A stretch of DNA of 63,786 bases, the filler included, from Octopus bimaculoides (taxonomy: Eukaryota), in assembly GCF_001194135.2 (NCBI RefSeq). It is 3 parts of 3 records of this genome, joined end to end, with 100 filler letters (N's around TTAATTAATTAA, not from the genome) between each part and the next. Parts side by side here need not be neighbours in the genome. Positions count along the whole stretch, not along the records: positions 1 to 31,420 come from NC_068993.1; 2 more parts are not named here. One strand, written 5' to 3'. This document shows positions 27,501 to 29,774 of the stretch, one piece after another. How positions within the stretch are numbered: the first letter of the stretch is position 1; every line of letters begins with the position of its first letter. A program made the position numbers and the translations under genes. A model generated the notes under the pieces. The model had not been told where the DNA came from and did not search any database. It was given only the letters and a program-made list of their open reading frames with translations.

Positions 27501-29774
27501 CCCCAGCATGACTGCAGTCTAATCATTATATATAAATATATATATATATATATACACACACACATTCCTATATTAATGTATACAGACACACACACACACA
27601 TATATATATACAGAGAGAAAGAGAACTAACAGCAACATGTGGTCAACCAATTTAACATTCACAAACAAAGAAAAAGAAAAAAAAAATCATTAAAAAAATT
27701 AGCACTAATTATATTTATACTCACATAATTAGCATAGGGTTCCATTTCCCACAAGGTCACATTCGTGTTGTCGATAATAACCAAATCTGTTCCCTCTTTC
27801 ATTGCATTTAGGGCTGTGGAAAAGTCGAGGGATTAGAAACACATCATTAATATCAGCAAGGCATTGAGAAGATAAATTGAAGAATTCACAGAACAAGAAA
27901 TGGGTATTTTAGGAACCAACAGGGCAGTCTGTTTTTAGTTTATAGTTTTGAATTTTTCTCTCTATTTATTTGTTAATGTCACTGGGAATGGAATTAATAC
28001 TTTAGCATACAAATTTCTGTCAAATGCAATGTGAGACAGACATACAGAAATATGAATGCAACAATGCAAAAGAGAGACAGATAAATAGACTGGAGGAAAT
28101 ATTTCTATTTACCTCTTCTCTGGTTCCAGGTATGAGCATCTGATAATTGCTCAACATCAAAACGGTAATTGTTGCGATTATCTTTAAAATAGTCATCTGT
28201 AGATAAAATGGCTGCTGTTTTATTCTTTGGTAAACATTCTAAAAGCTTTCTGAAATGTAATTTTAAAAAAATAATAAATAAATAAGAACAAAAACAAAAA
28301 AGAAAAGAGAAAAGAACAATAAAAGAGATCTAAGACCAGCCATAGTCTGACTTAGGTCCTCACTTTCTCTTTTCTTCATTCTCCCACACTGTCTTTTTCT
28401 CTCCCCTTCAGTTCTCTTTATCAAGTTCTAAATTTTTCCCTTCAAAGATACACTTTCTTTCCCTTGTTCTATTTACATTAGTGAAACCTCAGAAATATAC
28501 AGATGTGTCTGAAAAAAGATGAAATTTTTCTCCATTATTTTCTGTATATATTCCTGAAATTATATATATATATATATNNNNNNNNNNNNNNNNNNNNNNN
28601 NNNNNNNNNNNNNNNNNNNNNNNNNNNNNNNNNNNNNNNNNNNNNNNNNNNNNNNNNNNNNNNNNNNNNNNNNNNNNNNNNNNNNNNNNNNNNNNNNNNN
28701 NNNNNNNNNNNNNNNNNNNNNNNNNNNNNNNNNNNNNNNNNNNNNNNNNNNNNNNNNNNNNNNNNNNNNNNNNNNNNNNNNNNNNNNNNNNNNNNNNNNN
28801 NNNNNNNNNNNNNNNNNNNNNNNNNNNNNNNNNNNNNNNNNNNNNNNNNNNNNNNNNNNNNNNNNNNNNNNNNNNNNNNNNNNNNNNNNNNNNNNNNNNN
28901 NNNNNNNNNNNNNNNNNATATATATATATATATATATATATATATATACATATACGACGGGCTTCTTTCAGTTTCCGTCTACCAAATCCACTCACAAGGC
29001 TTTGGTCGGCCCGAGGCTATAGTAGAAGACACCTGCCCAAGGTGCCACGCAGTGGGACTGAACCCAGAACCATGTGCTTGGTAAGCAAGTTACTTACCAC
29101 ACAGCCACTCCACCAAATGATACAATATAAAATGTTTACTCAATCCATTTTCCATAATGCATGAAAAAATATCTTGTGCATTTCAAAAAAACATTTTAAT
29201 GTATCTTATTGATTCAAGAAAAATAGAACAGTCAGATCAGAGTATGAAATGGATTTTTTTTTAAATAAAATTCCATTGACTTTTGCCAAGTTATTTAAAA
29301 ACAGAAAAGCAAAGATTACTAGATCTAACGATAATGAGAAAGAACATTAATCATGACAACATGCAATGGAAAGCAAACACGGTGGTTGTTAAAGGTAAAC
29401 GATGACAACTTACTTTGCTAGCGTAGACTTGCCACTCCCAGGACATCCACGCATCAAGATAATAATTTTCTTTGATTGCAACAGAGATTGAATTCGCTTC
29501 CGAAGAACTTCATCAGATTTGGATTGAGCTGTGACACTACTGCTGTTGTTCTTCTTTTTCTGGCCGGCTTTTGGTTTCAAAGCTGGTTGGGTTGCTGCTA
29601 TATTGGCATACAGCGATGCTGGCATAGTGGATGGCTTGAATTCTTTAGCACAAGGATTCAAATTACCTCTCGGCGATGCAATGCCAGCAAGGTTTTCTTT
29701 TAGAATGAATACATCTGTTGGTCTTTTCTTTCCATGGCATCCAAACGAAGGAACTGGATCGTATTTGATACATG
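12550..29774 (-). CDS. N4BP2: NEDD4-binding protein 2-like (N4BP2/NONU-1/Cue2 family) P-loop kinase + CUE + DUF1771 + Smr endonuclease; 15 exons, 5' end incomplete
   Basis: Manual splicing: join(complement) 29774-29414, 28249-28113, 27813-27725, 27100-27024, 24997-24890, 24478-23718, 22498-22403, 20901-20735, 19883-19780, 18668-18560, 17692-17519, 15837-15770, 14232-14135, 13221-13095, 12589-12550. All introns are GT-AG with matching phases; 2516 nt, one open frame to TGA. Motifs [52 protein letters not shown] and ITGKG occur in the order I recall for N4BP2. Confidence 0.9.
13095..13221 (-). CDS. N4BP2: N4BP2-like exon N (Smr domain, ITGxG motif)
   Basis: GCTATTTCAG| ... CG|GTAAGT; [43 protein letters not shown]; phase 1 to 2. 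Confidence 0.93.
13685..13880 (+). mobile_element. tRNA-derived SINE family C
   Basis: TGTGGCTTAGTGGTTAGGGTG A-box-like head. Related copies at 2593-2720 (-), 5040-5175 (-) and 29905-30073 (-). Confidence 0.7.
14135..14232 (-). CDS. N4BP2: N4BP2-like exon M (Smr domain, DLHG motif)
   Basis: TTTTTATATAACCACAG| ... AG|GTAATA; [32 protein letters not shown]; phase 2 to 1. Confidence 0.93.
14500..14792. mobile_element. Interspersed repeat family E (SINE/LINE-tail-like)
   Basis: CCTTGTCACA.TGTGTCAC...TTAAGGGTACACGTGTCTGTGG.GTGCTCA.CCAC is shared with 2915-3086. Confidence 0.65.
15284..15622 (-). mobile_element. RTE-clade LINE 3' fragment (ORF C-terminus + 3' UTR), running into a gap
   Basis: [20 protein letters not shown]...[18 protein letters not shown]...DRDLWK is the typical RTE C-terminal signature; the downstream UTR matches 25761-25860. 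Confidence 0.9.
15770..15837 (-). CDS. N4BP2: N4BP2-like exon L (DUF1771-like, second part)
   Basis: CATTTCTTTTAG| ... TC|GTAAGT; [23 protein letters not shown]; phase 0 to 2. Confidence 0.85.
16085..16318. repeat. ~36-bp minisatellite GCATGAGTGTGCATGTGTATGTGT(AT)n
   Basis: About 5 direct units. Confidence 0.85.
16433..16870 (-). mobile_element. Tc1/mariner transposase remnant (maT/DD37D-like)
   Basis: [16 protein letters not shown]...[16 protein letters not shown], frameshift, then [23 protein letters not shown]...[11 protein letters not shown]...[13 protein letters not shown]; internal deletions, so the D-D spacing is inferred. Confidence 0.85.
17519..17692 (-). CDS. N4BP2: N4BP2-like exon K (DUF1771-like, first part)
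   Basis: TTTATATTTCAG| ... CAG|GTAAGA; [58 protein letters not shown]; phase 0 to 0. Confidence 0.85.
18560..18668 (-). CDS. N4BP2: N4BP2-like exon J (CUE domain, second part)
   Basis: CTCTCTCTTCCAG| ... GCG|GTAAGT; [37 protein letters not shown]; phase 2 to 0. Confidence 0.88.
19780..19883 (-). CDS. N4BP2: N4BP2-like exon I (CUE domain, first part)
   Basis: TTTTCATTTTCAG| ... GA|GTGAGT; [34 protein letters not shown], with the CUE-type FP motif; phase 0 to 2. Confidence 0.9.
20735..20901 (-). CDS. N4BP2: N4BP2-like exon H
   Basis: Long T-tract + CTCAG| ... AAG|GTTTGT; [12 protein letters not shown]...[21 protein letters not shown] (SLxxIM motif); phase 1 to 0. Confidence 0.85.
21795..22156 (+). 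mobile_element. Non-autonomous Helentron/HINE(DINE)-like element
   Basis: 5' ACCTCTGCC...GGCAGAGGT hairpin, (GTTT)n, and 3' CCTTGGCAGAGGT subterminal repeat + GCTCTCTGAGTGC hairpin; a second copy lies in reverse at 47861-48232. The family name comes from recalled architecture only. Confidence 0.6.
22403..22498 (-). CDS. N4BP2: N4BP2-like exon G
   Basis: TTTTCTTTGAAACAG| ... G|GTAAGA; [32 protein letters not shown]; symmetric phase 1 to 1, bridging exons F and H in frame. Confidence 0.75.
23718..24478 (-). CDS. N4BP2: N4BP2-like exon F (large basic then acidic/Ser-rich linker)
   Basis: TTCTCTTTAG| ... G|GTTAGT; 761 nt open; ends [28 protein letters not shown], resembling the conserved QLxELFGP block of N4BP2; corresponds to ORF 23713-24513. 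Confidence 0.88.
24890..24997 (-). CDS. N4BP2: N4BP2-like exon E (end of kinase domain)
   Basis: TTTATTGCTCAG| ... AG|GTAAGT; [35 protein letters not shown]; phase 2 to 2. Confidence 0.93.
25659..26193 (+). mobile_element. piggyBac-like MITE interrupted by an RTE 3' end
   Basis: TTAA at 25655-58 and 26194-97; TIRs CCCTTTCGTTAC / GTAATGGAAGGG. An uninterrupted inverted copy lies at ~20326-20528 (TTAA 20529-32) and a related copy at ~26653-26884. Confidence 0.75.
25720..26053 (+). mobile_element. RTE-related 3' end with (GAT)n tail, nested in a piggyBac-like MITE
   Basis: Shares the UTR repeat with 15284-15380 and ends CCCATGCTAGCATGGAAAGCAGACGTTAAACGATGATGATG. Shorter copies at ~9781-9948, 18018-18068, 18127-18380 (-), 23425-23578 and 27251-27345 (-). 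Confidence 0.8.
27024..27100 (-). CDS. N4BP2: N4BP2-like exon D (kinase domain)
   Basis: AATTGTCAG| ... |GTAAGT; [26 protein letters not shown]; phase 0 to 2. Confidence 0.93.
27725..27813 (-). CDS. N4BP2: N4BP2-like exon C (Walker B region)
   Basis: CTTTTCCACAG| ... |GTGAGT; [30 protein letters not shown]; phase 1 to 0. Confidence 0.93.
28113..28249 (-). CDS. N4BP2: N4BP2-like exon B (kinase domain)
   Basis: TTACATTTCAG| ... |GTAAAT; [45 protein letters not shown]; phase 2 to 1. Confidence 0.93.
29414..29774 (-). CDS. N4BP2: N4BP2-like exon A: PAM2-like motif, basic linker and Walker A
   Basis: Acceptor TTTATCTATCTTTGTAG| (phase 1, the least certain boundary), donor AA|GTAAGT. Encodes ...[23 protein letters not shown]...[20 protein letters not shown]. 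Confidence 0.8.

Follow-up and report, generated by a model that had tools for sequence, protein, structure and literature searches.

PAM2 peptides bind the MLLE domain of cytoplasmic poly(A)-binding protein (PABP) and have the consensus LNxxAxEFxP, of which Phe10 is the chief binding determinant (PMC7356810). MLLE has two hydrophobic pockets that are filled by Leu3 and Phe10 of the peptide, Asn4 steadies a turn and a small residue is required at Ala7 (PMC7356810). No-go and non-stop decay involve the Smr endonucleases NONU-1 and Cue2; in the animal proteins, the kinase domain is proposed to phosphorylate the product of cleavage for Xrn1 (bioRxiv 10.1101/674358). The founding description of this family comprises a basic region, the kinase, two CUE domains and Smr; PAM2 is not among them (bioRxiv 10.1101/674358). 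According to a 2025 review there is little insight on the animal member N4BP2 (PMC11806357). In plants PAM2 and Smr meet in the class C CIDs, which had previously been identified only in land plants (PMC4574140). Here we describe a PAM2-type motif encoded upstream of the kinase domain in LOC106869269, the N4BP2 orthologue of Octopus bimaculoides. The gene lies on the minus strand of a stretch of 63,786 nucleotides (the window), in its first piece of 31,420 bases from NC_068993.1.

A PAM2-type peptide in octopus N4BP2

Translation of the octopus stretch shows that window positions 29667..29632 encode, on the minus strand, a 12-residue peptide of PAM2 type. It fits the PAM2 core at six of the six fixed positions (Leu3, Asn4, Ala7, Glu9, Phe10 and Pro12), in agreement with the original prediction of a perfect motif here; its Cys6 and Lys11 are unusual. 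The peptide is in frame with the Walker A motif of the kinase, its Leu lying 71 codons and its Pro12 62 codons ahead of the first Gly, close to the 60 or so codons that had been predicted. It had also been placed at the N-terminus of the protein, which proved inexact, as it occupies residues 107-118 of the 908-residue isoform X1. The exon that holds it has the following features.

29632..29667, minus strand: PAM2 motif, from translation, the Pfam PAM2 match and the match to 1JGN_B
29425..29448, minus strand: Walker A (P-loop) GCPGSGKS of the polynucleotide-kinase-like domain, from translation and AAA_33
29623..29625, minus strand: in-frame ATG 3' of the PAM2 motif, start of predicted isoform X4 (P0218 begins MPASLY)
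29414..29774, minus strand: internal coding exon with PAM2 and Walker A, exon 2 of isoform X1 (acceptor tttgtag|C, donor AA|gtaagt; contigs from seven runs)

Six-frame translation of the 31,420-base piece yields a single instance of LN..A.EF.P, and 300 base shuffles of the window yield none. The only Pfam family matched by the peptide is PAM2 itself (PF07145; 17.4-17.5 bits, E 0.003, just under the 20-bit gathering cut-off). The only PDB chain matched is 1JGN chain B, the PAM2 of Paip2 (KSNLNPNAKEFVPGV) bound to the C-terminal domain of PABP. In an AlphaFold2 model of the O. sinensis protein, residues 1-162 have a predicted local distance difference test score (pLDDT) below 50 and no secondary structure, and the kinase and Smr blocks score 50-79; the model is poor throughout, with a mean pLDDT of 37 and an alignment depth of 2.

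The exon is spliced on both sides. Transcript contigs from seven runs (runs X1, X2, X3, X4, X16, X17 and X20) match 29414..29776 and then continue, downstream into the next exon at 28249 and upstream into a further 539-561 nucleotides of sequence that is absent from the window; run X5 and the runs of 'organism B' gave no match. The AG at 29776-29775 is the acceptor dinucleotide and also the end of the upstream exon, which leaves 29774..29414 as the exon proper. The final 31 bases of the upstream exon, translated in the frame of the motif, give DSISYESTLPA without a stop, and these are residues 61-71 of isoform X1. A search of the window for the last 30 bases of that exon found nothing, as did exact look-ups of window open reading frames that were meant to reach the neighbouring genome sequence and this exon; the upstream X1 coding exon and the alternative first exons of isoforms X2 and X3 could lie inside an assembly gap or past the end of the window. 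The start codon is outside the window and was placed from the RefSeq models and the transcript of a distant relative. Because the contigs splice the exon of the motif in frame to an upstream coding exon, the motif is translated in the main transcript form, which bears out the in-frame reading originally proposed.

Isoforms X1 (908 residues), X2 (849) and X3 (842) have different first exons and all include the motif, as do the gene models of O. sinensis and O. vulgaris. The one predicted isoform of the four that omits it is X4 (788 residues), which starts MPASLY at the ATG at 29625. No RNA contig examined from the seven runs supports X4 or any transcript without the upstream coding exon. A polymorphism at 29689 (A>G on the plus strand, CTT>CTC on the minus) leaves Leu unchanged in the motif frame; the variant is present in contigs of runs X4, X15, X17 and X20 and not in those of runs X1, X2, X3 and X16. 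An out-of-frame ATG at 29771-29773, minus strand, with A at -3, opens a frame of 43 codons that ends at 29666-29664, just ahead of the motif. It lies within the coding sequence of X1 and would be an upstream open reading frame in the PAM2-less X4. A reading of this exon-start ATG as an upstream frame, with the main start at 29625, was dropped when the upstream coding exon had been established.

The host protein is, by its sequence, of the N4BP2/NONU-1 type, as the original prediction had it. Pfam finds the P-loop kinase (AAA_33, 8.8e-15; KTI12, 3.8e-7). At the C-terminus it finds Smr, which scores 31 bits where the cut-off is 25.7 and has its catalytic DxH in VVDLHGM. RefSeq names isoforms X2-X4 'NEDD4-binding protein 2', and the best full-length relatives are the N4BP2 proteins of molluscs, a brachiopod, fishes and a marsupial. 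The PAM2 exon alone gave no match in a protein search, a query with the kinase exons retrieved kinase-only paralogues alone, and a near-full-length query was needed to reach the octopus orthologue.

Distribution among bilaterian N4BP2 proteins

A distant relative of 933 residues (P0122), predicted from a Logan transcript contig (SRR25158134) with an in-frame stop ahead of its ATG, is 37% identical to the octopus protein overall and carries FSLNPMAKEFKPT 67 residues ahead of Walker A. Its core, LNPMAKEFKP, is identical to that of octopus at nine of ten positions. The flanks are far less alike, with 27% identity over 98 aligned residues before the motif and 19% over 42 after it, and no other 10-mer ahead of the kinase is as well conserved in this pair. 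At 26.6 bits the motif of P0122 is over the cut-off of the Pfam PAM2 model.

A profile of two cephalopod-type proteins (P0121 and P0122) was searched against 1.84 billion representative proteins and the 150 best matches were scanned with a PAM2 expression set before the scan. Twelve motifs were found in these 150 representatives, every one of them within 300 residues upstream of Walker A; shuffling gave an expectation of 0.6 overall and of 0.09 in the upstream windows. Taxa of motif-bearing representatives, named by cluster look-ups, are listed below.

Mytilus (bivalve): ALSPNAKEFIPRS, 24.6 bits, over the Pfam PAM2 cut-off
Saccostrea (bivalve): ELSVTAKEFVPRL, no more than 2.1 bits from the cut-off
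Pecten (bivalve): ALSVNACEFVPNV, 20.2 bits, over the cut-off
Mya (bivalve): motif found
Sinanodonta (bivalve): motif found
Solemya (bivalve): motif found, no more than 2.1 bits from the cut-off
Nucella (gastropod): motif found, no more than 2.1 bits from the cut-off
Batillaria (gastropod): motif found, no more than 2.1 bits from the cut-off
Lingula (brachiopod): VFSPFAKEFVPSG, 21.8 bits, over the cut-off
Tubulanus (nemertean): motif found
Owenia (annelid): SFNINAPAFVPSF, 20.9 bits, over the cut-off
Acanthaster (starfish): motif found
Branchiostoma (amphioxus, a cephalochordate): motif found
Lamprey (cyclostome): weaker motif

The expectation that molluscs and other lophotrochozoans would share the motif is thus answered in the affirmative: it lies upstream of the kinase in molluscs, a brachiopod, an annelid and a nemertean, and five orthologous motifs exceed the Pfam cut-off. 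Nucella has two APEFK copies 14 residues apart. Among arthropods, no motif was found in the sampled beetles, millipede, mite and aphid, and the lobster N4BP2 has a partial one. Tortricid moths (P0206, P0207 and P0199; Cydia and Leguminivora) have their PAM2-like sequence, LTVNAPEFVP, some 330 residues downstream of the P-loop of the kinase; in Leguminivora it reads FTGNASGFVP. This position suggests relocation or independent gain.

In jawed vertebrates the equivalent place, 75-100 residues upstream of Walker A, is taken by WNxxAPEFxP. This spacing is close to the 67-71 residues of cephalopods. The variant was found with a small model built from the instances listed above and then with a relaxed expression, in proteins with the chordate-type basic N-terminus; the fish peptide is WNTQAPEFQPRSRAPAFVTPVA. 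Individual forms are as follows.

Arapaima: WNTHAPEFMPR
Gar: WNTQAPEFQPR
Wombat: WNPMASAFEP

The original prediction was not aware of a PAM2 in vertebrate N4BP2. A variant with Trp for Leu3 is present at the equivalent position; the fish and marsupial forms escape the Pfam PAM2 model. Human N4BP2 probably has a further-degenerated WNPMIPAFDL there. A second conserved element, PxF[VI]TPVA, usually follows WNxxAPEFxP after 10-15 residues (P0250, P0279, P0278, P0242, P0271, P0272 and P0281), about 60-90 residues upstream of Walker A, and the layout of the two recalls the overlapping double PAM2 of eRF3.

The relaxed pattern [LFMWI][NSD]xx[AV]xxFxP is found upstream of Walker A in 43 of 72 non-redundant representatives that have both kinase and Smr, where shuffling gave 0.4 expected and a maximum of 4. 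Only one of 89 kinase-only paralogues (N4BP2L1/L2) has it. Across phyla the distance from motif to kinase ranges from 59 to 275 residues. A PAM2 or PAM2-like motif upstream of the kinase is, judged from these sequences, a feature of most sampled bilaterian N4BP2 proteins and not a cephalopod novelty.

Proposed docking on PABP and competing explanations

We propose that the octopus motif is a genuine, translated short linear motif of PAM2 type in an apparently unstructured N-terminal region, predicted to dock on the MLLE domain of cytoplasmic PABP, and we regard this as probable. Docking itself we infer from the likeness of the peptide to known MLLE ligands. Leu3 and Phe10 would occupy the two hydrophobic pockets of MLLE, with Asn4 holding the turn and Ala7 turned towards the domain surface. 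Such docking would concentrate the Smr endonuclease and kinase on poly(A)-tailed messenger ribonucleoproteins, in the manner in which eRF3, PAN3, Tob and GW182 are recruited to the tail. The enzyme would then plausibly stay near the 3' end, at which ribosomes entering poly(A) stall and collide (non-stop decay), and there it could cleave the mRNA and then phosphorylate the 5'-OH product. Given the part of NONU-1 and Cue2 in no-go and non-stop decay, a tether to PABP would plausibly suit ribosomes that run into poly(A).

That a PAM2-type docking site for PABP is ancestral and family-wide in bilaterian N4BP2, with the vertebrate WNxxAPEFxP as a functional form of it, is a possibility that we advance tentatively and consider less than even. 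If it were true, PABPC would station this candidate endonuclease-kinase of no-go and non-stop decay on poly(A) tails in animals generally, in parallel with plant CID7, and there would be a direct physical reason for cleavage at ribosomes stalled in or near poly(A).

Several observations weigh against these proposals. The octopus peptide, at 17.4 bits, is below the 20-bit cut-off of Pfam and falls to 14.7 bits in a context of 170 residues, and the structural model is too poor to do more than suggest disorder around the motif. Most sampled insects are without the motif; because they lack it, the motif is evidently dispensable in some lineages. The relaxed expression behind the count of 43 of 72 was designed after the data had been seen, the effect being very large nonetheless. 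The Pfam PAM2 model does not detect the forms of fish or marsupial with Trp for Leu3, and the variant of jawed vertebrates may bind something else. With the vertebrate variant missed by Pfam and another partner possible, family-wide conservation alone is no proof of PABP binding. The link to non-stop decay would be carried over from other organisms by reasoning, and the involvement of mammalian N4BP2 in no-go decay is itself described as not yet demonstrated (PMC11806357).

The peptide might have arisen by chance and be without function. Short motifs do arise in this way in low-complexity regions and that of octopus is just below the Pfam cut-off, but the absence of the pattern from 300 shuffles of the window, the 12 motifs against 0.09 expected, the 43 of 72 against 0.4 expected and the nine of ten core identity with P0122 against 19-27% in the flanks make this scarcely credible. 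It is also very improbable that the motif belongs to a 5' untranslated region, with translation from the ATG at 29625 and the peptide never made. Such a reading draws on the RefSeq prediction of X4 (788 residues, starting MPASLY). The ATG in question, raised in the original prediction as a possible start, does exist and is the first in-frame one inside the exon; but the exon turned out to be internal and the motif to be coding in three of the four isoforms, to which the models of two sister species are added. All examined contigs, from the seven runs, carry the X1 junction to an upstream exon that is open in the motif frame, and in P0122 the ATG, after an in-frame stop, is about 100 codons upstream of its PAM2. 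Conservation at the amino-acid level across phyla is something that an untranslated region cannot account for. Both explanations are effectively excluded.

The main rivals concern the partner of the motif. We think it unlikely that the motif serves some partner other than an MLLE domain, or regulates the adjacent kinase within the same molecule, with the PAM2 likeness in lophotrochozoans a partial convergence. The vertebrate WNxxAPEFxP, which is followed by PxF[VI]TPVA and missed by the Pfam PAM2 model, would especially fit a different partner, and the fixed spacing of 75-100 residues to Walker A, common to vertebrates and cephalopods, could mean a link to the kinase. Against this, the peptides of cephalopods, Mytilus, Pecten, Lingula and Owenia are canonical and pass or nearly pass the Pfam cut-off with no other family matched, and the span of 59 to 275 residues across phyla argues against a rigid intramolecular role. 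In addition, the positions kept across phyla ([LFMW], N/S, A, F and P) make contact with MLLE (PMC7356810). It is also rather improbable that the motif, as a real MLLE ligand, has as its main partner the MLLE of the HECT ligase UBR5/HYD in place of PABPC, which would tie the nuclease to ubiquitylation or to turnover of the nuclease itself. The sequence gives no means of telling UBR5 from PABPC as partner. Animals have two proteins with an MLLE domain, PABPC and UBR5/HYD, and PAM2 peptides are bound by either, as Lim et al. reportedly established in 2006 (cited in PMC7356810). Another HECT ligase, NEDD4, is the partner for which N4BP2 was named. PABPC is favoured by the closeness of the octopus peptide to PAM2s of the Paip2 and ataxin-2 type, which bind PABPC tightly, and by the other domains of the octopus protein, which act on RNA. 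The analogous plant PAM2-Smr protein CID7 is, furthermore, defined as an interactor of the PABP MLLE (CTC) (PMC4574140).

The host gene and comparison with known systems

Fifteen exons on the minus strand, from 29774 down to 12550, encode residues 72-908 of XP_014770422.1 (isoform X1, P0216) with essentially 100% identity. Those downstream of the PAM2 exon, all on the minus strand and all placed by alignment to the isoform X1 protein, are listed here with further evidence where there is any.

28113..28249, minus strand: kinase exon, ending WNQRR; ends of RNA contigs map to 28220-28249
27725..27813, minus strand: kinase exon with Walker B-like DNTN
27024..27100, minus strand: kinase exon
24890..24997, minus strand: C-terminal exon of the kinase
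23718..24478, minus strand: large middle exon, acidic and serine-rich, poorly conserved; 100% identity to residues 328-581
22392..22499, minus strand: coding exon, approximate boundaries
20735..20901, minus strand: coding exon, ending IELELK
19781..19883, minus strand: first part of the CUE-like helical region; sub-threshold DUF7816, no Pfam CUE
18560..18673, minus strand: coding exon, approximate boundaries
17519..17692, minus strand: coding exon, approximate boundaries
15769..15837, minus strand: coding exon, approximate boundaries
14135..14232, minus strand: first Smr exon, DxH in VVDLHGM; Pfam Smr match
13095..13221, minus strand: second Smr exon
12550..12589, minus strand: last coding exon and stop codon

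Ubiquitin sensing through CUE, which had been predicted for this protein, was not borne out. Pfam finds no CUE (PF02845) in the octopus protein, where a sub-threshold match to DUF7816 (17.5 bits against 27, residues ~670-716) is all that appears, and no DUF1771 (PF08590), which arthropod orthologues have. Residues ~560-830 of the isoform X1 protein (window 22499..15769) have neither domain by Pfam, unlike arthropod and vertebrate N4BP2, and at 908 residues the octopus protein is about half as long as these. By eye, the octopus sequence looks like the C-terminal CUE-like part of other N4BP2 proteins. The ubiquitin-binding module may be divergent or reduced.

The introns contain several elements. 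ARAGORN calls a tRNA-Ser(GGA)-like sequence within an intron at 23471-23553 (minus strand), and the stretches at ~29040-29110 and 29990-30075 resemble it; by eye these look like dispersed copies of a tRNA-derived short interspersed element. Mobile elements have left remnants within the introns, at 16433-16880 and 15382-15690 on the minus strand. One of these two intronic open reading frames has a tail like that of a DDE transposase (Pfam DDE_3, sub-threshold at 14.8 bits). The other ends in GRPRKTW, which is typical of ORF2 tails of retrotransposons without long terminal repeats, Pfam giving no confirmation. Runs of N (assembly gaps) lie at ~30253-30611, 28580-28930, 21470-21690, 20050-20330, 14790-15290 and 10910-11060, and their flanks are (TA)n and (CA)n microsatellites.

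The octopus motif shares the 10-residue core LNxxAxEFxP with the PAM2s of Paip2, ataxin-2, Paip1, eRF3, Tob and PAN3 (PF07145), and NLNP-AKEF-P of octopus is identical to NLNPNAKEFVP of Paip2 at nine of 11 positions. Its setting, too, resembles that of the canonical motifs: a protein that works on mRNA and, within it, a region that appears unstructured. The canonical hosts are translation factors or deadenylase adaptors, whereas the octopus host is an endonuclease and kinase. The PAM2w of LARP4/4B and the overlapping double PAM2 of eRF3 show that the MLLE pockets accept other large hydrophobic residues (PMC7356810). Because of this tolerance, the vertebrate W-for-L variant and the downstream F element are plausible MLLE ligands. 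The parallel is inexact, since the Trp of PAM2w replaces Phe10 and that of vertebrate N4BP2 replaces Leu3 and is missed by the Pfam model.

Compared with the published N4BP2/NONU-1/Cue2 family, the octopus protein, known here from its sequence, adds a PAM2 and has about half the length of vertebrate N4BP2. A search of PMC open access and bioRxiv, with subscription journals outside its range, found no paper that joins N4BP2 with PAM2 or MLLE; the plant CID study (PMC4574140) was the only one found to combine 'PAM2' and 'Smr domain'. The PAM2 motif and the N4BP2 family are both known, and it is their combination that appears to be new to the literature searched. A conserved PAM2 would bear on the poorly understood question of how the animal Smr endonuclease N4BP2 reaches its substrates and would offer a simple route by which endonucleolytic quality control is coupled to poly(A) tails. 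N4BP2 would join the few factors that dock on MLLE, namely eRF3, PAN3, Tob, GW182, Paip1/2, ataxin-2 and LARP4.

The closest architectural counterpart is Arabidopsis CID7, with the plant class C1 CIDs, which like the octopus protein has an N-terminal PAM2 and a C-terminal Smr in one polypeptide (PMC4574140). The two would share the logic of an Smr protein tethered to PABP. CID7 consists of PAM2, a CUE variant, DUF1771 and SMR without a P-loop kinase; the octopus protein has the kinase and no Pfam CUE or DUF1771, and the likeness is one of architecture alone. The PAM2-Smr combination has been thought plant-specific (PMC4574140), and a conserved PAM2 in N4BP2 would place it in animals as well.

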